64,000 nt of DNA from Epithemia pelagica (taxonomy: Eukaryota; Protista; Bacillariophyta), in assembly GCA_946965045.2 (NCBI GenBank), contig OX337228.1, positions 5,890,001 to 5,954,000 of the forward strand, read 5' to 3'. Position numbers and translations under genes: made by a program. Each line of letters begins with the position of its first letter. The stretch's first letter is position 1. The notes under the pieces were generated by a model. The model was not told the DNA's origin and did no database searches. It worked only from the letters and a program-made list of their open reading frames with translations. This document shows positions 4,185-54,849 of the stretch, piece by piece.

Positions 4185-6216
4185 ATGAGAGAGCAAACGA
4201 CCAAAAAGAGGCCGAGCTTGTGGCGGCGTCTACTTCTGAGACCCTCGTATTGGGTAGCCCTGGCAAGCGTTCTCGTGTACTGGGATGACAACGCGCTGCA
4301 TGGAAGTTTTATCTATGACGACGATGGTGAGCCAATACACGACAATGTGAGAGTCTAATTTTTCATACGGCCGTCTAATCCAATCGTTCACTTCTCCTGA
4401 CATTACTTGTGTGTCGTCACCACCAGGATCGATTCGAACGAATCCTGTTGTCAACGGGAAAGTTCCATGGACCGATGTTTTCAACCGAGATTTTTGGGGC
4501 ACCCCAATGATCAACGTACAATCACATAAATCTTTTCGACCCATAACCACCTTATCGTTTAAGCTGAATTGGATTCTTTTTCCGCCGCCAGAGACTGAGC
4601 CTTTTCCAGGGTCGGATCGGTCTGTCGGGACGTACAGTTTTCATGTTGCCAATCTTTTATCGCATGGATTTGTATCGGGGCTTGTCACAGAAGCTGCTGG
4701 TTTTGTGTTCCATGGCGGCAAAATGGAAGATTCTATTGCACAGATTGTAACTGGATTCTTGTTTGGTTTGCATCCAGTACATGCTGAGGCCGTCAGCAAC
4801 ATTACCAGTCGCGGTGAAATGTTGATGTCCTGTTTCTTTCTTTTGGCCTTTCTTTCGTATTCAAGCCAAATATGTACTCGAACAGGCAAACCCCGTCGTG
4901 GTGTAATGTCCTTTCTTGCAATCTACGTCTTTCCTTGGATTGCCATGACGCTGTCTTTATTCAGTAAGGAACAGGGCGGATCCACTTTGATTACACTTGT
5001 TGTCTATGACTTTCTTCACAACTATTTCTCGGTTGTCGATTTGGTCAAATCAATAATGAGAAGGGAGAAGGCGGCGTTGTCGTTTGTTCGAAGAACCTTT
5101 GTTCTTGCTATAGAAACTTTGGTGATCTGTGGGTGGCGTTATTGGTTGAATGGAGAAACGAAACCTGATTTCATTTTTGATCAAAATCCAGCAGGATTTG
5201 CTCCCGACAGATTCACGCGAGCCTTCTCTGTCACCTGGGTTTATTGTTTGTACATATGGGATGCCATATATCCCCGCTATCTTTCGGTTGATTGGTCGGG
5301 ACAAAGTATTCCTCTGATCACAGAGATTGGGGATGCACGAGCCCTTGGAGTTTTGGCTCTCTGGGGTTTTGCCTTTCTTTGTCTTCTCTCCATAATTTTT
5401 GGATTGCCTTCAAGCGTATCTCAAAGCACCCGCTACTACCGAACCACAACATTGATTAGTTTTGTTGGGTTTCTTTTTTGTCCATTCCTACTTTCCTCGA
5501 ATATTTTCGTTGTTGTTGGCTTGATGAAAGCCGACAGAGTCATTTACCTTCCTTTGGCGGGCTTCTGCATGCTGGAGGCTCAGCTTGTTCGTTATCTGTG
5601 TTCGCCGTCTACGTCAATGTCCGCTTCTGGAAATGTGAAATGGAAGTGGTTTTCTCTCACGAAGATTTGCAATGGTTTAGTGTTGGTGCAGACTCTCCTT
5701 TTGTCTCGCAAGGTCCATGAAAGAAACATTTCCTGGCAGAGCCCCGAGCGCCTATGGACCTCTGCCTATAAGGTCAATCCCAAGAGCCATCACACGATGT
5801 ACAACTGTGGATACAATTTGTCGTTGATGGGGCGCTATGTCGAAGCAGAGTACGTTCTGCGCAAGATTAGTGACCCCGAGGCTGATGGCCCAACAACAAC
5901 GTTTGTCTATACGATGGTCTTGCAGAATCTTGGACGTTGTGATGAGGCTCGGCTTTTGATTGACAAAGCCATGGTAGTGTTGGAAGAGCAGAAAAGGAAA
6001 GGTGGTGTACGCAACACTGTGCAGTCCCTAAAGCGAGCTAAAAGCAACTTGTTAGTGGCAAGAGGCTTCTGCACCAAGGACATTCCTGAAAGAGCAAAGA
6101 TCTTCTTGGAGTCTGTGGAAGTCGACCCGTCGAACAATTTTGCTGTTGATTCTGCAACAGCATTGAACGAGCTGATAGGGAAAATGAAACAACAGGGATC
6201 TAAGGTACATCTATAA
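4185..6216 (+). CDS. TMTC-family protein O-mannosyltransferase-like membrane protein (DUF1736 + TPR)
   Basis: Exons 4185-4326 and 4427-6216 (100-nt intron). FIYDDDGSIRTNP, DFWG, SHKSFRPITTLSF, LHPVHAEAV, DQNPA, LSVDWS and ADRVIYLP. Confidence 0.88.
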
Positions 6217-6302
6217 AAAACGAACCTCAAGTGTATCTTTGCTCATGTGATGACAACTTCATTCGCATGCCCCAAAACGATATTCCAAGAAACACACACG
6301 AA

Positions 6303-7947
6303 CTACATGTCGACATGTTCATGCCACTCTTGAACAAGTTCATGTGCTTTCGCATTGTCATCCATCCCCTGCCACTTGATCAATTGCTGTCCCTGTGCCT
6401 TTTTTCGAATCCGATACAACACAGCTGCCATTACAAGCAAAAGGCCAAAGAATCCAGTGGCCGTTACCTTGTGACCATATAGGACGCAAGATAAGGCAAT
6501 GCTCAATAGAATTCGAGTTGTCATGATCAACGTAAAGACAACGGCCCCGAAATTCTTGATAGTGTAGAAAATAAAAAGTTGCCCAATGGTAGAACAGACT
6601 GAAAACAAAAGAAAATGCCAATGGATCTCTGAATGTTGCATAGCGAATTCCATTGCCGGATAAAGTTCTTTTGTATGGACCAGCGTTACGAATGACAACA
6701 CTGTCGAAAATGCCGAAGTTGCGAACATCATCTCGACCATGCTTAGATCGCGATGACGCTGAAACATTCGACTTTGAAACTGACTGGTGAAGCTATCAAA
6801 GAACAAGAAAAGAAACAGGAGCATGATTCCAGTCCATGCACCGCTAACTTCAACTCCATATGCGTCAATGTCAAAGCGTAGGCCATCCGTGGACGTCATG
6901 AACATAGTGATCCCAGCTCCGATCAACAGCGCAACAATGTAGTCATATTGAGGATAGGATTTATTACCCAACAGCTTTCCCATCAACATTACCGGAGCCA
7001 GTTTGAACGACTTGAACAGCGTGGTTGCAGGAAATGAAACGTATCGTAGTGCTTCGTACTGACACCAACTGCTCAACATGTTTGAAATACTTGGAAAGGA
7101 ATACTCGTAGATCACTGTTGTCCGACTGCGGCGTGGTTTCATGTAAACGAGGAGCATGGTTGACATTATAAGTGTCCAGAATCGATTTGTAAACACTAAA
7201 GCGTAGGAGTAAGTAAAATACTCCCCATTCTCGGATTTTCGAGGGTACTTTCGCGTTAGCATACGCTCCTGTTGTTGAAAAACCGTTTAGATTGAGTACT
7301 TCTCTGAAAGGATACAAAACGAGACGATCGACCGGACTTACTTGTATTGCTCCCCAAGTGATAAATGTAAGATTGAGCATAAGAGAGCAGAAAAGAAGTC
7401 GCCGTAGTACTTGTACTCTCGACAGACTTTCCTGATTAAATTCTTCCAGGAAGAAACTTGTTCTCTTCCTCGCCGGTGCTCGTCGCAAAGCTTTAGTTTC
7501 TTCTTCATCATCGCTATCCAGAACTTCTGATTCGTCTTCTATATCGCCATCGTCCTCGGCATCTGAGCCATAATATTCCATTTCTTCCTCCTTGGCGATT
7601 TCTGCCATTCGATAGCTGTATGATCGTGATCGTTGTACTGACGGCTCAGAACGCTGCAAGGATTCTGGAAAGTAAATTTTTGCAACAATAGTTGCAATTA
7701 TTACCATTGCCACATATAGAAGGAAATTGGTAGCCAAAAGGTAGAGCTCCGCTTCCGCAGCTTGGGAGAGGAGGGGTTTGGACGATGGATCAGTAACATC
7801 TACGGTTGTCTCATTGATGTTAGATCCCCCTTGATCTGAAGATGCGGTCACTAGTAGACCATCATCATCTCCCAATACATCAATAAGGTATCTCATCATC
7901 TGACGCGGGTCAGTTTCAGTTGCGAGCGTTACGAAATCCATTGTCAT
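6303..7947 (-). CDS. PAPS transporter 1 (SLC35B2-like, UAA family) with long N-terminal extension
   Basis: Exons 7947-7342 and 7268-6303 (intron 7341-7269). WGAIQERMLT, LVFTNRF, QYEALRYVSFP, KSFKLAPVMLMG, FFDSFTSQFQ, GQLFIFYTIKNFGA and TTRILLSI. Confidence 0.88.
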
Positions 7948-8052
7948 GCACTCCTATTGCTTTGGTCGTACGATGATAGGATCGTGACTCTCGTTGTCGC
8001 TGTGAATTGTGAGCATATTCCCATCTTCCATCCCATGTCCGGGGGAGATCTG

Positions 8053-8088
8053 TCCCCCATTTGCCTGGGGTCCCCCATTTGCCTGGGG
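8053..8088. repeat. Perfect 18-bp tandem duplication TCCCCCATTTGCCTGGGG x2 in the PAPST/Lhcf divergent promoter
   Basis: Copies read directly at 8053-8070 and 8071-8088. Confidence 0.9.
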
Positions 8089-8215
8089 GTGGGCGCAGAA
8101 AACCAAAGAGTCATTCCAGTCGCGTAAACCAACAAAGAATCCAGAACTTTTTGTTGAACCTAAAAGATTGGTCCAAACTGGTCACATAACCGACTGATCT
8201 TTGCAAAAGATAACC

Positions 8216-8821
8216 ATGAAGTCTGCTGTGTTCGCCTCCCTCGTTGCTTCGGCCGCTGCTTTCGCCCCCGCCTCGCAAAAGGCGTCTTCGTCTGCTCTTA
8301 AGGCTTTCGAAGACGAGCTTGGTGCCCAGCCTCCTTTAGGACTTTTCGATCCCCTTGGCCTTGTTGCCGACGGTGACCAAGAAAAGTTCAACCGTCTTCG
8401 ATACGTCGAAATCAAGCATGGACGTATCTCCATGCTTGCCGTCGTTGGATACCTTGTCCAAGAAGCCGGTTATCGCCTCGGTGGAACCATTGATCTTTCC
8501 GGAAAGACCTTCGCCGATATCCCCAACGGATTCGCCGCCTTCAAGGAAATCCCTGCCGGTGGACTTTGCCAACTTCTTTTCTTCATCGGCTTTTTGGAGA
8601 CCACCATCATGAAGGATGTCACTGGCACCAACGAATTCCCCGGTGACTTCCGTAACATGAACCCCGAGGGTGGCCTTGACTTCGGCTGGGATACTTTCAC
8701 CGAAGAAGAAAAGCTTGAAAAGCGTGGAATCGAATTGAACAACGGCCGTGCTGCCATGATGGGTATTCTTGCCCTTATGGTCCACGAACAATTGGGAGTG
8801 TCTCTTATCCCCGAAGCATAG
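8216..8821 (+). CDS. LHCF: Fucoxanthin-chlorophyll a/c binding protein, Lhcf type
   Basis: MKSAVFASLVASAAAFAP presequence; ELGAQPPLGLFDPLGL, RLRYVEIKHGRISMLA and ELNNGRAAMMGI. Confidence 0.97.
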   Translation: MKSAVFASLVASAAAFAPASQKASSSALKAFEDELGAQPPLGLFDPLGLVADGDQEKFNRLRYVEIKHGRISMLAVVGYLVQEAGYRLGGTIDLSGKTFADIPNGFAAFKEIPAGGLCQLLFFIGFLETTIMKDVTGTNEFPGDFRNMNPEGGLDFGWDTFTEEEKLEKRGIELNNGRAAMMGILALMVHEQLGVSLIPEA

Positions 8822-9124
8822 ACTTGACGTTATTTCGTCGAGATCATCAAGATCTAGATAGGTTGATGTAATCTTAGAAAATGGCTTTCATACAGGTTAT
8901 AAAATAAAGAACCTACCGACGTCCATGATCACTTTCTTTCTTTCCTTGAGCTGTTCCGATAGAAGTCGAAATCTCTAGGATCCAGGAGTAGTGCTTACCA
9001 TAGAACCATAGGAACCGTAGGATATGGGACAACTCGGAACCTGGCGAGATGTAATTTCAGTCGTCATTCTACAGATCCATGACACGCCGTTGTCACCAAA
9101 AGCGCAGCAAATGGAAAATGGAAC

Positions 9125-10210
9125 ATGACCAGTGAACAGATGGACCGCCCTTTTCGTTTCATTGAAGTTCATGGCCAAGAGGACGACGCTCCGGATTCTC
9201 GTGATCCTTATGTGGAAGCCTATATTGCGTCCGTGGAAGCTCAACGATGTGGATTGCTGGTAAAGGAAATCACAAACGGTCTGCCAGTAAACAAGCAGCT
9301 GTCTCATTTGAAACGTGTGCGACGTCGCTTGAACCAGGATGAAGACAAGACAAATTCGTCAGACAAGCAAATAAATGAGGCTGTCACTAAGCGTCGCAAA
9401 ACAACGGCCGTACCCCAGGCGTTCTTAATGACTTTGGACATTCTAATGGGACCTTGTTTGGTCGTGGACCAGCACCTGAGCAGCGATCCCACTTCGAATG
9501 GAAAAACGACCGAAAGCATTCTAGCTGATAGGTTCAAAGTGCACGCCGTTTTTCGCGAAAGAGTGCCTCGACGACCGGCCGAATGTCGAGCGGAATGGGA
9601 GGAGTTCGATGCCATTTGGCCAACCAACTTTTATCCGCTCAAGACACTCGAACACAAAGTAAAGCAACTCGAACTTTCCAAGAATGAGATAGATCAAATG
9701 ATCGTTGGTGTCAATGCTGCTATTGCTGATGCAAACGAAGAATCAAACCAAGAGTTGACGGCACCTGGTGCAGTTGTTGTTCAAAATACAACCAGTGACA
9801 TTTTATCGAGAGCTTCCAGCGAACGGATTCTGCAGAAAAGATCGAACCTTTTCAATCCTCTACAAACTTCAATTTTGCTTGCTATACAGGGAGTGAGCCG
9901 AACGGAACGTCAAGTGGCCACTGGAACGGGTATGGATAGCAATACGTTCCAGAAAGGACAATATCTATGCACAGGATGCACTCTCTACACAACCAGAGAA
10001 CCAACTCTTTTCGAAGCTATGGCGCTGGTCCACGCTCGGATAAGCCAAGTTGTGTTCATGAAGGACGATGCGTGTAAGGCTTCCTACGTCAAAGGACTGA
10101 CTGAGAAATGCGTCCACAACTTGCCAGGCACAAATCACAAATATCGCGCATTCCAATGCGAAAGTGTCACGAGCAAAGAAAAGGAAGTTGAAACTCCAGT
10201 ATGTGAATAA
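9125..10210 (+). CDS. ADAT3: tRNA-specific adenosine deaminase subunit 3 (ADAT3/Tad3)
   Basis: LSHLKRVRR, WPTNF, YLCTGCTLYTTREPTLFEAMALVHARISQVVF and NHKYRAF. Confidence 0.85.
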   Translation: MTSEQMDRPFRFIEVHGQEDDAPDSRDPYVEAYIASVEAQRCGLLVKEITNGLPVNKQLSHLKRVRRRLNQDEDKTNSSDKQINEAVTKRRKTTAVPQAFLMTLDILMGPCLVVDQHLSSDPTSNGKTTESILADRFKVHAVFRERVPRRPAECRAEWEEFDAIWPTNFYPLKTLEHKVKQLELSKNEIDQMIVGVNAAIADANEESNQELTAPGAVVVQNTTSDILSRASSERILQKRSNLFNPLQTSILLAIQGVSRTERQVATGTGMDSNTFQKGQYLCTGCTLYTTREPTLFEAMALVHARISQVVFMKDDACKASYVKGLTEKCVHNLPGTNHKYRAFQCESVTSKEKEVETPVCE

Positions 10211-49816: not shown

Positions 49817-50327
49817 TCTTTCCGTTGAACGGTTTTCAAGTTGCCATGCCTGCTTGCAATATCCTGTTTGACAGGTCAACTCGGCTCTCTAATGACTAGA
49901 TAGCTAGGAGTACTATTAGCCACTATCGAAATTCGGGGTTTTAGCTATGGAATGGGAACACGATCTACTTAACGCCATTCGTAATCGGGCAGTAAATACA
50001 CTACTCGCATAACTTTGAGTAGTAAATACACTACTCGCTTAATTTCCTTTCCACCCTACGTCGTCAATATCCACGTCATCTCTTTTTTGACCCGTCATTC
50101 TGATAGATCTCGTCATTTGGAGCGTTTTGGTATATGACACCCTACACTAATTCTCAAGTTGTGATGGTTGTTTCCTCGTTCAAAAAATCGCTACTTTCCC
50201 TCATTTTTCTTCCTTGACGATAGAGGTCCGACTTTGACCATAACTCCTACATTCTAAAAGTCGTTTCGAGTGTCGGCAATCTCCATTCAAGTCCATAATA
50301 ACATCAAGAAGTGGTGTACGGAAGGAT

Positions 50328-53300
50328 ATGTTGTCAACCTCGACCAATTCGGCCGGAGAGACCCAAACGTCACAGAGTGCGTACTCTCAGTCGTTACTCG
50401 ATTCATCTCAAGAAGCCAACGAATCAAGTCAAGCATCCTCCAGACCAGTTTCTGTTCCTACGCGACGACAGCCACAACAACGCAATCGGTTCTCCTACGC
50501 AAGAAGAAAGTTGATCGCTCCACATTCATTCTGGCTCGATCGGAATTTTCTCAACCGGTTCACTGCCACATTTCCTGGTCGAACAGTGAGCGCGCCGTTG
50601 TTGCTTCAGGGACAGATCCAAGCCTGTCCAACGAACAAGAATGGAAACGTTTATGTTGTATTTTGGAACCAAGCTGACCACCCAAATCTTGATCCAGCTT
50701 GGGTATGCCGTCATTACCCGTCGACCCAGTATTTCAAGGATCTCCTCAAAGACTACATCTATGCCTACGACGATTGGAAACGTCGTCAGGATTCGACGGG
50801 AAATACCTCTACGACCAACAACAACAACGCCGCTCCGTATTCTCGTCGTAACCAATTGTCTCCAACCGACAATAATACACAACAAACTTCCACCACCTTG
50901 ACCCAGACCGACAATACACAGCCAACTTTGAACCAAGTCACGCAGACAAACAATACACAGCAGCTTTCGATGTCTTCGACCCGTGGCAATAATCGGGAAA
51001 GTGAAACCCCACTTTCGCACGATTCCAATGAACCTGATTTGCCTTCTCCCCAAGATGACGACAATTCTGATAACCAAGACATCCCATCGACAATTGAAAG
51101 GGCCCAACGTCGCGCTCAACTCCGAACTGCAGCTGCAGAAGATGGGTCACCTGCTCTGTCCAATCTCACAGACAACCAGCCAAGTCAAGGCATTACAGGC
51201 AACACACCTCCAACCAATCCTGACTCTCGTCCCATACGCCTTTTTGGGAGCGGCAGTACTGTCACTAATGGAGAATCTGGTACCGCGACAGAGAACGCGT
51301 CAATGCCTAGTCGGCGACTTCGACGACGACCCAATGACACAGAGGACTCAAGTGATTCTGAATCGGACGAAGATGGAGCGGACCCAGACGACAATTTGGA
51401 ACAAGACGAACAAGTTCCACGCCCAGACAATCCACTGGAGGACCAGAATGATTCGGACGATGAGGATGAAGAGGAAACTGAAGAAACACCCCCTCCCGTG
51501 CCCCCTCCACAACAAAACACAAATGCAGCACAACAAAACACAAATGAGACGAATGAGAACAACCAACCAGAACAAACCATTCGTCAACTCATGGATGCGT
51601 TGGTATTTTCATATCAAGAGACAGAACTTTCGGCTGAACCTACCGAATGGATTGGAAAAGACGCGAATCATCGTTCCATGTACAGTGGACCAGATGGTCT
51701 CAGGAATGGAGTTAGTGACAACTTTACCAATCCATACCAATGTTTCCAGTTTGTTGGTGGCCTGTCAAATTCGCTGATAGCAGATATGGCAACTGCTACG
51801 AATGTTTATTTCCACGAGAAGATAAAACCAAACCTGGTGTCTCGTCGTGGATACTACCACTCACAAAAGTGGCAGAATGTCACTCTCGAAGAGATGACGA
51901 GATTTCTAGGGATCATCCTGATGATGTCCCTTCGTCCCGTCGACGGAGGAGGATACGGTGCATATTTTCAAACTACAAATCGCATGTATAATGTCGGGGC
52001 CGGCCAACCGGCTATTGAAATCAAAGATAGCGCAGGATGGGCCAGTCAATATATGAAGTTAGCACGTTTCCGGCAGATTCGGGGGGCTTTCCACTTCGAG
52101 GAGAGTCCAAGCAGGCGTGGCGGTGACAAATGCCATCAGTTACGAAAGTTGATCACAGCCCTCAACGCAGCTTCAAAACGTAGCTTCCGGATCCCCAAAG
52201 ACATGGCGTTCGACGAAGGTGGCATTGGATGCAGGTCACGGTACTGTCCGGTGAGACAGTATAACAAAGATAAACCCCAGAAGTTTCGGGTTGACTTTTT
52301 TATATTGTCTTCTTCTTCCACCTACGCAATTCTTCATCTGGACGTTTATCAAGGAAAAAACACGTCCAATGCCTACATACGGCCGGAAGCTAAACAGCTC
52401 CCTACTACCATGAAGGCAGTCGTCAACGCCTGTTACGCATTGGGCATCCACAAGTTGACAGATGGTTACCGGCATCTGTCGATGGACAATCGATACGCTG
52501 CTCCGAAGTTGGCAGTCATCCTCCGCGACCGGCTCCGTCTTTTTTCCACTGGGACATGTCGGGCCAATAGGATTGGTTGGAATCGAACCAAGTTGAATTT
52601 GAAGCGGACAAAGACAAATCGGGGTAATTGCATCTTGTTTCATGACCCAGTGAATGGGCTCATCTTCGGGCAGTGGGTGGATTCGAAAACGGTGAACTTC
52701 GTAAGTTCCTACGAAGATTCTGGAAGTGGGATCGTCCTCCGCCAAGTGGGCAGTCAGAAAGTGGAGTTTGTTTGCCCTGTACCGCTAATACGGTACCAAA
52801 TGAATATGGGCGGCGTTGATAATGGTGACCAGATGAGGTTTCAGTTCGGAGGATTTGCAACCCATTCACACTTCAAGAAATGGTATAAGAAATCTGGCTT
52901 CGCTGTGATTGATTGTATGCTACTCAACAGTTATATTGCTTGGAACCTTGCAGCAGGCAATCGTCCTCGTTCCCGTAAAACGAAGTTGTCGCGGCATGCA
53001 TTTTACACAATCATTGCCCAAACAATGTGCAGCTACGTCGCTCCTCAGGAAGTAGATGCTTTGGCTCGTCGGACAAGAAACAATAACGAATCAACATGTA
53101 ACGATGGGCACTACCCAGTGGCGGTAGAAAGCAACAAACAAGTTGGATGTGCTGTGTGTATGCTGGAATATAGATGGAAGAAGCAAGAACTTAAGATGGG
53201 TGGGTTATTCAAGAACGTTGGGAGATGCGTCAAGTGTGGGATTGCGGCCCACACGGTGGCTTGCCAACACAAAGGAGAAGAAGGCTGGAAAATCCACAAC

Positions 53301-53615
53301 CGGCCTGAGTTTCAGAACAAGACGTGCTTCGAAATCTTGCACTCATCAACAGGAAAAGAGATTTTCGTGGAGGCAGACGAGGGGTCTCGGTACACATACA
53401 CGGTGAGAAAGAACCATCCCGTTGTGGCGGAACTACGGGAAGCACAAGGCTTGACATCAACGTTGACTCGGAAAAGAACACGCCAAGGAGCCGGAGAAAC
53501 GCAACCACGTAGACGAAGACGACAAAATGAGAATGAAGAGTCGGATGCATCAAATACAGACAATGAGAACAACGAAGATAACGACGAAGATGATGAAGAG
53601 TTTGAGGCAGTGTAG
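50328..53615 (+). CDS. piggyBac-family DDD transposase (1,095 aa) with long N-terminal extension and Cys-rich C-terminus
   Basis: YMKLARFRQIRGAFHF, FDEG (D629), RQYNKDKPQKF, MDNRY (D720), WVDSKTV, YQMNMGGVDNGDQ (D831/D834), KKWYKK and LLNSYI; C-terminal CAVC...CVKC...H...CFEILH. Confidence 0.93.
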   Translation: MLSTSTNSAGETQTSQSAYSQSLLDSSQEANESSQASSRPVSVPTRRQPQQRNRFSYARRKLIAPHSFWLDRNFLNRFTATFPGRTVSAPLLLQGQIQACPTNKNGNVYVVFWNQADHPNLDPAWVCRHYPSTQYFKDLLKDYIYAYDDWKRRQDSTGNTSTTNNNNAAPYSRRNQLSPTDNNTQQTSTTLTQTDNTQPTLNQVTQTNNTQQLSMSSTRGNNRESETPLSHDSNEPDLPSPQDDDNSDNQDIPSTIERAQRRAQLRTAAAEDGSPALSNLTDNQPSQGITGNTPPTNPDSRPIRLFGSGSTVTNGESGTATENASMPSRRLRRRPNDTEDSSDSESDEDGADPDDNLEQDEQVPRPDNPLEDQNDSDDEDEEETEETPPPVPPPQQNTNAAQQNTNETNENNQPEQTIRQLMDALVFSYQETELSAEPTEWIGKDANHRSMYSGPDGLRNGVSDNFTNPYQCFQFVGGLSNSLIADMATATNVYFHEKIKPNLVSRRGYYHSQKWQNVTLEEMTRFLGIILMMSLRPVDGGGYGAYFQTTNRMYNVGAGQPAIEIKDSAGWASQYMKLARFRQIRGAFHFEESPSRRGGDKCHQLRKLITALNAASKRSFRIPKDMAFDEGGIGCRSRYCPVRQYNKDKPQKFRVDFFILSSSSTYAILHLDVYQGKNTSNAYIRPEAKQLPTTMKAVVNACYALGIHKLTDGYRHLSMDNRYAAPKLAVILRDRLRLFSTGTCRANRIGWNRTKLNLKRTKTNRGNCILFHDPVNGLIFGQWVDSKTVNFVSSYEDSGSGIVLRQVGSQKVEFVCPVPLIRYQMNMGGVDNGDQMRFQFGGFATHSHFKKWYKKSGFAVIDCMLLNSYIAWNLAAGNRPRSRKTKLSRHAFYTIIAQTMCSYVAPQEVDALARRTRNNNESTCNDGHYPVAVESNKQVGCAVCMLEYRWKKQELKMGGLFKNVGRCVKCGIAAHTVACQHKGEEGWKIHNRPEFQNKTCFEILHSSTGKEIFVEADEGSRYTYTVRKNHPVVAELREAQGLTSTLTRKRTRQGAGETQPRRRRRQNENEESDASNTDNENNEDNDEDDEEFEAV

Positions 53616-53698
53616 TAAAAAACAGATCAACATATCAAATTGACATTCTAAGCAATATTCAGTTACTACTACGAGGATGTATTGACTCCCTGTGTTGC

Positions 53699-54145
53699 CT
53701 AATGGTCAGTAGGAGCAGGAATGAAACCAGTATAAGGGTCGTCTGTGTTTTCATTCGGGAAATTTTCACGGACAAAGTCCACTAGGCAAGGAGGTAGTTC
53801 AACACGGTTGCCCTTCCCCAGTGTGCCATAGAGCTTGTTGGTAAGGCGGCGGTACAAATGGTAGCGTATGGAACGGTTAGGCTTACCAAGGCCCTTGAGG
53901 TGCGTCGCAATATCGTGCATGTAAGGGAGGTGCTCAACAACTTGGCACGGGTTGAGTTTGCAAACGGGGCAAACATTCTCCCAAAACATGTATCCATGTT
54001 TATTGCTAGAAGACTGTTGAGTATTGTTCAATTCATGAAGGATGCGGTCAATGCTTTCCATCGTCGCGTATTCTTCAGGAATAAAGCGGGTTTCAGTGCG
54101 TTCTTTGGCTTGGTGAACTACGTTGCCGTCCTGATTTGTTGTCAT
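53699..54145 (-). CDS. Transposon-borne accessory protein (148 aa) with a P2X7-ballast-like motif
   Basis: Open frame extends to 54340; ATG 54145 is the best start. CPVCKLNPC then NRSIRYHLYRR...YGTLGKGNRVELPPCLVDFVRENFP...YTGF. Lies wholly inside the TIRs. Confidence 0.75.
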   Translation of the reverse strand: MTTNQDGNVVHQAKERTETRFIPEEYATMESIDRILHELNNTQQSSSNKHGYMFWENVCPVCKLNPCQVVEHLPYMHDIATHLKGLGKPNRSIRYHLYRRLTNKLYGTLGKGNRVELPPCLVDFVRENFPNENTDDPYTGFIPAPTDH

Positions 54146-54849
54146 GACAAGAGACTTCTGCAGGGTAAAGGGCACAAACACTCCACTTGATGAACAGTTG
54201 TTGTCGGGGAGGTGGGTTTCTGCAATGTCGACAGATTCGTTGAATGCTAAAAGACAAAACAAAAATGAGGTGAGGATCATTTGCGCATCGTGAATGGGTG
54301 CGATAGCAACTTTTGGTATAATCGTTCCGTACAAACACACCTTCCATCATACCCGGGTCATCCATGGTTGCGTTGTGGTTTGGTTTGACAATTCAATGAT
54401 CCCAATGACATAGTGCAATGAGATCAGTCAATGCATTGGATACTACAGCGCGATGAAAGCAACAAAAATGATGCTGGCGGAGAGTTAAAACGATCTGTTT
54501 TCAAACACGGTTAAGGCGCGAGCAGTATAAGCGAGCATAACCACTAATCCCATAAATTTTATGCGAGTAGTAAACTGGTTGCTCGCTAGTGCTTAAAACG
54601 CGTTCCTTACGAATGGCGTTAAAGGAATGATTAACTAGGATAGGTTGTGCTATGGCTTTTGTCTGACTTCTTGTCCGGACTCGACAGGTAATTGGCAAAT
54701 CTCTTGGCAGCCTCTCGTCCGAGCTTTTAAGGCAATTTCATTGAGCTCCCGCAATGGCGGTCGCGCGGGATAAAGGTCATAAAGACGACTTATGAGCGAT
54801 TGAGGATGGATCTTTTTCTCTGTCGGGGCAAAGATCCAACGACTCGACC

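Follow-up and report, generated by a model that had tools for sequence, protein, structure and literature searches.

Canonical piggyBac is the textbook example of a transposon with a single gene, and an important tool of genome engineering. Does the piggyBac element that we describe here from the diatom Epithemia pelagica carry a second gene of its own, and if so, what does this gene encode and what might it do? The element is 4,654 bp long, is flanked by TTAA and occupies 49969-54622 of a 64,000-nucleotide stretch of contig OX337228.1 (assembly GCA_946965045.2, positions 5,890,001 to 5,954,000 of the forward strand), which is referred to as the window. Between its terminal inverted repeats (TIRs) lie a transposase gene and, on the opposite strand, a small open reading frame (ORF) that we call ORF2. 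We observed that this ORF is a real gene, the second one of a clade of two-gene piggyBac elements present in diatoms and other marine protists. We also observed that the last ~90 residues of its product share homology with the end of the ballast domain of P2X7, and represent a short, four-cysteine form of the ballast/KolX domain.

ORF2 is the second gene of a two-gene piggyBac clade

An original prediction, made from the sequence of the window, had placed an ORF at 53699-54340 on the minus strand, between the TIRs and 83 bp from the stop codon of the transposase. The ORF coordinates and the TIR match confirm this: the ORF2 frame runs through 213 codons from GTG to stop and lies inside the TIRs. 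The two genes are arranged as follows.

50328-53615, plus strand: piggyBac transposase gene, 1095 aa, uninterrupted
53616-53698, no strand: spacer of 83 bp between the convergent stops (the transposase ends at 53615 and ORF2 at 53699)

The same convergent layout of transposase and ORF2 was found in eight further elements, which bears out the suggestion that this is a two-gene piggyBac lineage. The ORF2 homologs P0001-P0003 are each convergent to a DDE_Tnp_1_7 gene and TIR-enclosed, in elements of 4.7-4.9 kb with TIRs of the form TTAACGCCA(T/A)(A/T)CGTAA. As all three stem from the assembly that also contains the window (ENA ERZ21939226), these loci are paralogous subfamilies and not independent genomes. 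Another, distant homolog, P0013 (36% identity), is separated by 10 nt from the convergent gene of a 989-aa piggyBac transposase, on Joint Genome Institute (JGI) metagenome contigs (L007/L008). TIRs of the TTAACGCCAATC form enclose both genes in L007, L013 and L014 (L014/L015).

We also performed a prospective test, in which four transposase relatives were picked by transposase similarity and contig size alone, with ORF2 ignored. Two of them were from Seminavis robusta (GCA_903772945.1), one was on Logan read-assembly contigs (L014/L015), and the fourth was on an ENA metagenome contig. In each of the four, the gene directly downstream is convergent, has the four cysteines described below and matches the hidden Markov model (HMM) of the ORF2 family at E-values of 1e-15 to 1e-29 (hmmsearch). 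The co-occurrence of both genes, proposed earlier as a check, was thus observed in every element that had been chosen by its transposase, and in L013 and L014/L015 it was observed inside TIRs.

The transposases of the elements sharing this layout are only ~41-48% identical. Pairwise identities of transposase and ORF2 among eight elements gave a Pearson coefficient of 0.93 and a Spearman coefficient of 0.56, the pairs not being independent of each other. Between the subfamilies, the proportion of non-synonymous differences in ORF2 (pN) was 0.11-0.29, as against 0.77-0.91 for synonymous differences (pS); pN and pS are given in place of the corresponding substitution rates (dN/dS), because synonymous sites are saturated (pS >0.75). 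As pN is low while the synonymous sites are saturated, these values indicate long-term purifying selection on the ORF2 protein. A one-off capture had been named in the original prediction as one outcome that would speak against a two-gene lineage; instead, homologs occupy the same place in at least eight further elements from several genomes.

We made some further observations on individual loci of the family. In the subfamily of P0003, the transposase gene at L003 (8678-11667) has at least two frameshifts, and all six clustered transposase calls (cluster P0191 is involved) are truncated, to 277-913 aa. Seven of the eight loci of this subfamily have an intact ORF2 (175 aa), several of them on contigs shared with truncated transposases. 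This may mean that copies with a defective transposase keep ORF2, or it may be an effect of ORF2 being six times shorter. At L009 (799-2081), the ORF2 homolog P0010 (191 aa) is convergent to a 226-aa gene that matches the N-terminal module of the transposase only, and the next gene is a glycosyltransferase of family 4; this locus represents a decayed element or else a domesticated pair. At L011 (2313-3731), a distant member, P0167 (118 aa), is divergently oriented to a gene that Pfam matches to Mutator (PF20700), and this may be a Kolobok-type or Mutator-type element with a KolX-like gene.

The C-terminal domain of ORF2 is homologous to the end of the P2X7 ballast

Two folded parts were recognized in the 181-aa product of ORF2 exon 2 (the gene model is given below).

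53711-53974, minus strand: short-form ballast/KolX-like domain, C-terminal, residues 91-178 of the 181-aa product
54014-54178, minus strand: N-terminal module (residues 23-77 of this product), built from one helix and four beta strands

The domain has cysteines at positions 92, 95, 100 and 153 of the 181-aa product, which are C59, C62, C67 and C120 in the numbering of the 148-aa form of ORF2. The first three make up a CxxC-x4-C motif and C120 is part of LP-x-C. The motif string that had first suggested a likeness to the ballast was found as quoted, cysteine positions included, except that one spacing is YR-x7-G and not YR-x6-G.

The window protein was searched exhaustively with phmmer against 1.84 billion cluster representatives; this gave 376 relatives at E <= 1e-3, nearly all of 70-250 aa and aligned to residues 56-145, and a profile-based word search added three more. 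One phmmer match, to the 3172-aa bacterial surface protein P0023, was spurious. C59, C62, C67 and C120 are the sole invariant columns in a 61-sequence alignment of the family, and in a 139-sequence alignment one cysteine is invariant and three are near-invariant.

Pfam P2RX7_C (PF20478) was matched at E <= 0.01 by 33 of the 61 relatives, with a best E-value of 9.8e-9. When the 61-sequence profile was run against 177,635 distinct Protein Data Bank (PDB) sequences, it matched P2X7 chains only (E 7.9e-5, residues 538-592). A 14-sequence ORF2 profile was aligned by hhalign, at 98% probability and an E-value of 1.9e-13, to P0073, a protein carrying bona fide P2RX7_C domains (E 5.4e-14).

The structural comparison led to the same domain. 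The AlphaFold2 (AF2) model of the 181-aa product has a mean predicted local distance difference test score (pLDDT) of 83, rising to 90-98 in the C-terminal domain. When 48,161 representative chains were scanned with this model using VIA-align, which is independent of Foldseek, rat P2X7 (6u9v_A, residues 478-595) ranked first, over model residues 91-178 (86 residues, root-mean-square deviation 3.4 A, 20% identity), with a Z-score of 6.4 that is moderate for a helical domain and would be weak if it stood by itself. The matched stretch coincides with the part of P2X7 (476-595) to which KolX has been likened (Kojima & Bao 2022). Among clusters of the AlphaFold Database (AFDB), most of the matches, with a probability of 1.0, were to proteins annotated as 'P2X purinoceptor 7-like' or 'P2X7 intracellular domain'. 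The best of the AFDB matches, A0A2V3IZP5, was aligned over residues 33-175; from its accession block, we take it to be a protein of Gracilariopsis chorda. A feature search of the ESM Atlas with ORF2 returned only unnamed or zinc-finger-like clusters, with scores of <= 0.90.

The family profile, the hhalign result and the AF2/VIA-align comparison agree that the likeness to the ballast goes beyond chance. We concluded that the homology is secure, because the fold match and the sequence statistics combine. ORF2 keeps the positions of R546, Y550, P570, C572, F581-P582 and YxGF of P2X7, and has a glycine-rich LGKGNR loop of its own. As a separate observation, P0073 is a metagenomic protein of 950 aa with two tandem P2RX7_C domains, and it has a GRGNR-x2-LPSC loop in common with the piggyBac form; judged by these motifs, it is an intermediate between canonical ballast domains and the four-cysteine form.

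The N-terminal module was modelled at a pLDDT of 82-91 and is conserved in P0001-P0003. It is specific to closer relatives and was aligned in few of the distant matches (P0007, P0008, P0076). No significant fold match to this module was found by Foldseek in PDB or AFDB Swiss-Prot. Its weak matches to IHF/HU-like and phage coat proteins had E-values of 0.2-2 and template modelling (TM) scores of <0.25, and the IHF/HU-like candidate (E ~0.24, TM <0.25) was rejected as evidence.

The zinc and nucleotide ligands of the ballast are only partly kept in ORF2

The zinc-coordinating domain (ZCD) that includes the ballast is defined by three cysteine clusters: PxWCxCx2C (cluster 1), LCCRx3GxCITT(S/T) (cluster 2) and (L/I/V)PSC(C/S)x3IRx2(F/Y)Px5Y(S/T)G (cluster 3) (Rump et al. 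2020). Cluster 3 is present in the window protein as LPPC-L-x3-VR-x2-FP-x7-YTG, with the second cysteine replaced by leucine. A possible counterpart of cluster 1 is W-x3-C-x2-C, which has one cysteine fewer and a different spacing. Cluster 2 was not matched in the window protein, where there is no LCC and a P-C-(V/I) remnant lies four residues past CxxC. The seven or eight zinc-coordinating cysteines of the dinuclear ZCD site are likewise not matched in the ORF2 family, which has four. To judge from their number, the four would be enough for one tetrahedral zinc site and not for the dinuclear site of P2X7. Going by the range of the structural alignment alone, C59, C62, C67 and C120 may correspond to C479, C482, C506 and C572 of P2X7.

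The GDP ligands of rat P2X7 are R546, H547, R574, R578 and K583 (Rump et al. 2020). Among these five, the R546 equivalent alone is conserved across the clade.

ORF2 is probably a two-exon gene

The gene model of ORF2 in the window is as follows.

54341-54365, minus strand: predicted exon 1 (25 nt), ATG plus 22 nt, encoding MDDPGMME-; the ATG is 258 nt from the element end
54247-54340, minus strand: predicted intron, 94 nt, phase 1, GTGTGT...TTTTAG
53699-54246, minus strand: exon 2, stop included, residues 10-190 of the proposed 190-aa protein; acceptor TTTTAG|CA

The original prediction had adopted a 148-aa form, which begins at the ATG at 54145. However, the conservation of the protein with P0001-P0003 (58-63% identity) runs upstream of this ATG, in the VPFTLQK and ESVDIAE blocks, and the 148-aa model is therefore probably too short. 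All four loci compared (the window, L001, L002 and L003) have an identical 5' layout, in which an exon of 7-25 nt is followed by GT. Each also has a predicted phase-1 GT..AG intron of 91-94 nt, with a pyrimidine-rich AG directly before the conserved block, and retention of the intron breaks the ORF2 frame, by a shift or a stop, in three of the four. The distance from the start ATG to the element end is 258 nt in the window versus 265-279 nt in the three paralogous subfamilies. From the conserved upstream blocks and this intron layout, ORF2 is probably a two-exon gene encoding ~190 aa.

The element is contained in three read sets, X1, X2 and X3, two of which resemble DNA assemblies (contigs >400 kb); a second search for runs gave no RNA run. 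In X3, the summed contig depth was 5,700-9,400 for ORF2 (53641-54308) versus 418 for the transposase body (50468-52304). In X1, which is from the same sample, the two were equal (452 for ORF2 and 421 for the transposase). If X3 is an RNA library, ORF2 would be expressed 10-20 times more than the transposase. One X3 contig (depth 552, 30 nt on one side) skips 54238-54491, and the skipped part opens with GT on the minus strand. The alignment of this contig may have been clipped by a single-nucleotide polymorphism (SNP) at 54240, so that the skip could really end at the predicted acceptor AG (54247). The result would be an alternative intron of 245 nt, running from a leader exon near the TIR and bypassing the predicted exon 1.

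The public ENA gene calls for the contig contain a 110-aa ORF antisense to ORF2 (53858-54190, plus strand; identical to L010 6531-6863), and ORF2 itself is uncalled. The antisense call is probably an annotation artefact. The ORF2 of the window is missing from protein collections because the public calls hold this antisense ORF instead.

The element has been recently mobile

A second full-length copy of the transposase, 99.4% identical, is present on another contig. Contigs of runs X1 and X2 join 49970 straight to 54622, that is, they carry the empty site, at full local depth, and the left end of the element is joined to other flanking sequences in the same runs. In view of the empty-site contigs, the insertion is polymorphic at the window locus, and the element, which looks autonomous, is recently mobile. 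The empty site reads TT-C-A in place of TTAA, and 6 of 171 bases are unlike the window flank. A target-site SNP of a divergent haplotype or strain could explain this; an excision footprint is less likely.

Anatomy of the element

The ends of the element and its subterminal repeats are listed below.

49969-49984, plus strand: left end, TTAA target-site duplication (TSD; 49969-49972) followed by the 12-nt TIR CGCCATTCGTAA; a 16/16 inverted repeat with 54607-54622
54607-54622, minus strand: right end, TIR and TTAA (54619-54622), the exact complement of the left end
50000-50012 and 50030-50042, plus strand: two direct subterminal repeats, ACTACTCGC(A/T)TAA, with inverted matches to 54559-54571
54559-54571, minus strand: right subterminal repeat, an inverted copy of ACTACTCGCATAA

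By analogy with piggyBac biology, the subterminal repeats are probably binding sites of the transposase. The transposase matches Pfam DDE_Tnp_1_7 (PF13843) at an E-value of 2e-42 (146 bits, cut-off 22.4; profile positions 2-349 of 349). With this transposase and a TTAA TSD next to short TIRs, the element belongs to the piggyBac superfamily. The window corresponds to contig ctg1285l of ENA assembly ERZ21939226, on which the exact transposase protein is called. The terminus TTAACGCCA(A/T)(T/A)C is common to the window element, L001-L003, L007, L013 and L014, and in all the related elements the convergent genes are separated by a short spacer (10-240 nt).

Upstream of the DDE domain, the transposase has an N-terminal module at about residues 34-172 (window 50430-50840), which is kept in distant elements; its identity is 35% in L007 and 29% in the truncated gene of L009. 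The corresponding piece of L003 has a weak match to Tudor_5 (E 0.0014); this module may be a chromatin-targeting domain.

What ORF2 may do for the element

We hold with moderate confidence that ORF2 is a zinc-stabilized, trans-acting accessory factor of a two-gene piggyBac clade, which would depend on it. The protein would be stabilized by zinc at its four cysteines (CxxC-x4-C ... LPxC). Its conserved Arg/Tyr/Gly-Lys-Gly-Asn-Arg surface could then bind a phosphate-bearing ligand, such as a guanine nucleotide or nucleic acid, or else the transposase, and in this way the protein might promote or tune transposition. Selection on the element would keep ORF2 linked to the transposase.

Several observations weigh against this interpretation. 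On the side of homology, the window protein alone matched P2RX7_C at an E-value of 0.025 and 14.9 bits, below the gathering cut-off of 23.5, with the match confined to profile positions 142-191 of 192, and the Z-score of the VIA-align match is modest, as stated above. Of the structural searches proposed earlier, Foldseek of the ORF2 model against PDB and AFDB Swiss-Prot gave no significant match; it was VIA-align that ranked the P2X7 ballast first. On the side of function, the isoelectric point (pI) is 7.7 for the domain and 6.0 for the whole protein, which disfavours strong nucleic-acid binding. The full set of GDP ligands was not matched: H547 is replaced by tyrosine, the equivalents of R574 and K583 are absent, and the R578 equivalent, arginine in the window copy, is histidine, lysine or asparagine in related elements. 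The near-neutral pI and the poor conservation of the GDP ligands thus argue, at the level of sequence, against canonical binding of GDP and against a simple, strong binding of DNA. A published abstract (PMC9859053) still calls the function of the ballast unknown, and the homology therefore supplies no mechanism.

Expression and individual copies also provide points on this side. The predicted ORF2 splice junction was absent among the joints reported for the contigs of run X3, and no clear transcript was found there. In the P0003 subfamily, one copy is broken up into pieces of 107 aa and 70 aa (P0158 and P0159). A variant X3 contig has five non-synonymous changes and one synonymous change in 156 nt, among them an arginine-to-cysteine change at a near-invariant arginine. 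Decay of individual copies is expected for a transposon.

An alternative that we consider unlikely, and yet worth weighing, is that ORF2 acts in self-restraint or counter-defence, damping transposition or interfering with host silencing. Convergent transcription over the 83-bp spacer could, on this account, give transcripts that overlap at their 3' ends and so feed small-RNA pathways or titrate them, and the convergent layout with very short spacers is indeed kept in every element examined. A protein that is not basic would also suit such a role, and the 10-20-fold higher depth of ORF2, if X3 is RNA, fits a highly expressed small regulator. However, the library type of X3 is unrecorded, and no result here bears on silencing or inhibition. 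Moreover, the related accessory protein of Kolobok occurs in other arrangements, so that convergence is not required.

It is quite improbable that ORF2 is a passenger, that is, cargo that hitch-hikes with the element or was captured from a host or from Kolobok, and is kept by host benefit or by linkage. Homologs do occur away from intact piggyBac elements, namely at L009 (with the transposase N-terminal fragment and the glycosyltransferase) and at L011 (with the Mutator-like PF20700 gene). Stand-alone and multi-domain P2RX7_C proteins exist as well, and Nanor is thought to be a domesticated KolX. But the position, the orientation and the enclosure by TIRs are the same in elements whose transposases have diverged to the extent given above, both genes have diverged in parallel, and the protein is conserved while synonymous sites are saturated. 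Some lineages would be expected to have lost or disrupted neutral cargo, whereas ORF2 is present in all four prospectively chosen elements.

Kolobok and piggyBac both make TTAA-specific duplications, and their transposase superfamilies are unrelated. Because of this shared specificity, one may speculate that the role of ORF2 is tied to TTAA-site transposition. The mini-ballast would then be a portable cofactor that moved between Kolobok and piggyBac, with a function in the chemistry or repair of TTAA transposition, or in a guanine-nucleotide sensing that times transposition, and not bound to any one transposase fold. The form found in diatoms and the SAR (stramenopile, alveolate and rhizarian) group would be a minimal, perhaps ancestral, version that was later fused to P2X in vertebrates. 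This extension is doubtful, and we put it forward as a speculation; if true, it would provide a tractable free-standing protein for learning what the ballast does.

Finally, that ORF2 is a one-off capture or a chance ORF, to which the sub-threshold Pfam match of the single sequence and the public call of the 110-aa antisense ORF might have pointed, is refuted by its 376 relatives, its presence in at least eight further elements from several genomes, the confident AF2 model and a pN far below pS.

A trans-acting accessory factor thus remains the reading that we prefer. That a clade keeps a second protein down to ~41-48% transposase identity implies a requirement that is absent from the standard one-gene model. 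The zinc and GDP/GTP sites of the ballast are without known function according to the same abstract (PMC9859053), and a small soluble homolog with a transposition read-out in a transformable diatom could make this question testable. The architecture can now be defined: two convergent genes, TIRs with the motif TTAACGCCAWWC, an intron that is conserved, and a protein signature of four cysteines plus LGKGNR. Public gene calls miss ORF2 or place it on the wrong strand.

Comparison with known systems

We compared ORF2 with four kinds of known proteins. The P2X7 ballast (rat 6U9V/6U9W; human 9E3M-9E3Q; PF20478) has the C-terminal helices in common with it, and also the final motif (L/I/V)P-x-C-x4-(I/V)R-x2-(F/Y)P-x5-7-Y(S/T)GF; the window copy has equivalents of R546, Y550, P570, C572, R578 and F581-P582. 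Unlike the ballast, ORF2 is free-standing and not the tail of an ion channel. It is without the ~30 residues between the first cysteine cluster and the helices, and without the LCC cluster; it has four cysteines versus seven or eight, and no equivalents of H547, R574 and K583.

Nanor and the nanor-like ZCD proteins (PTHR36981; fish and invertebrates) resemble ORF2 in being small, stand-alone proteins with a ballast-type zinc-coordinating domain. Of the GDP ligands, Nanor keeps the equivalents of R546 and R578 only, and H547 is often tyrosine, as in ORF2. Nanor proteins are products of host genes with a complete cysteine motif, whereas ORF2 is encoded in a mobile element and has a reduced set.

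KolX is an accessory protein encoded by Kolobok elements of the Kol0 lineage; it is similar to residues 476-595 of P2X7 and has the ballast fold, and P2X7 and Nanor are probably derived from it (PMC9587614). The original prediction had pointed to a possible link with KolX, and this was correct (Kojima & Bao 2022, PMC9587614). It was also right in tying the ballast fold to mobile DNA outside animals, but this had already been published in the same paper. KolX in this sense was found in no other paper of the literature searched. KolX, like ORF2, is a small protein whose gene lies beside that of a DDE transposase, and Kolobok is likewise a cut-and-paste element with a TTAA TSD. The transposase superfamily is, however, Kolobok and not piggyBac, KolX has seven conserved cysteines for two zinc ions where ORF2 has four, and Kol0 has been described mainly from animals.

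Two described families, piggyBac-2_GrCh and piggyBac-14_PI, are alike in having a second ORF in a piggyBac element; from the abbreviations, we take their hosts to be a red alga and an oomycete, respectively. Kojima and Bao noted that a few piggyBac families encode a cysteine-poor KolX-like protein, in one sentence with two sequences, piggyBac-2_GrCh_2p and piggyBac-14_PI_2p, in Data S6 (Kojima & Bao 2022, Mob DNA 13:24, PMC9587614). The ORF2 of the window meets this description. When the motifs were compared by eye, C-x2-C-x3-P-C ... LGKG-x-R ... P-x-C ... Y-x-GF was common to these proteins and ORF2, with the fuller pattern C-x2-C-x3-P-C ... G-x-LGKG-x-R-x3-P-x-C ... Y-x-GF in the GrCh sequence. 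The window element differs in that its host is a diatom and that it has many relatives in marine metagenomes, and the paper is without the architecture, the intron, the selection, the N-terminal module and the spread across the clade. The gain is a modest one, the extension of a one-sentence note in the literature to diatoms: the kind of system was already known, and what is new here is the diatom members, the clade-wide spread, the TIR motif, the intron, the selection on ORF2, the N-terminal module and the structural match to the P2X7 ballast.

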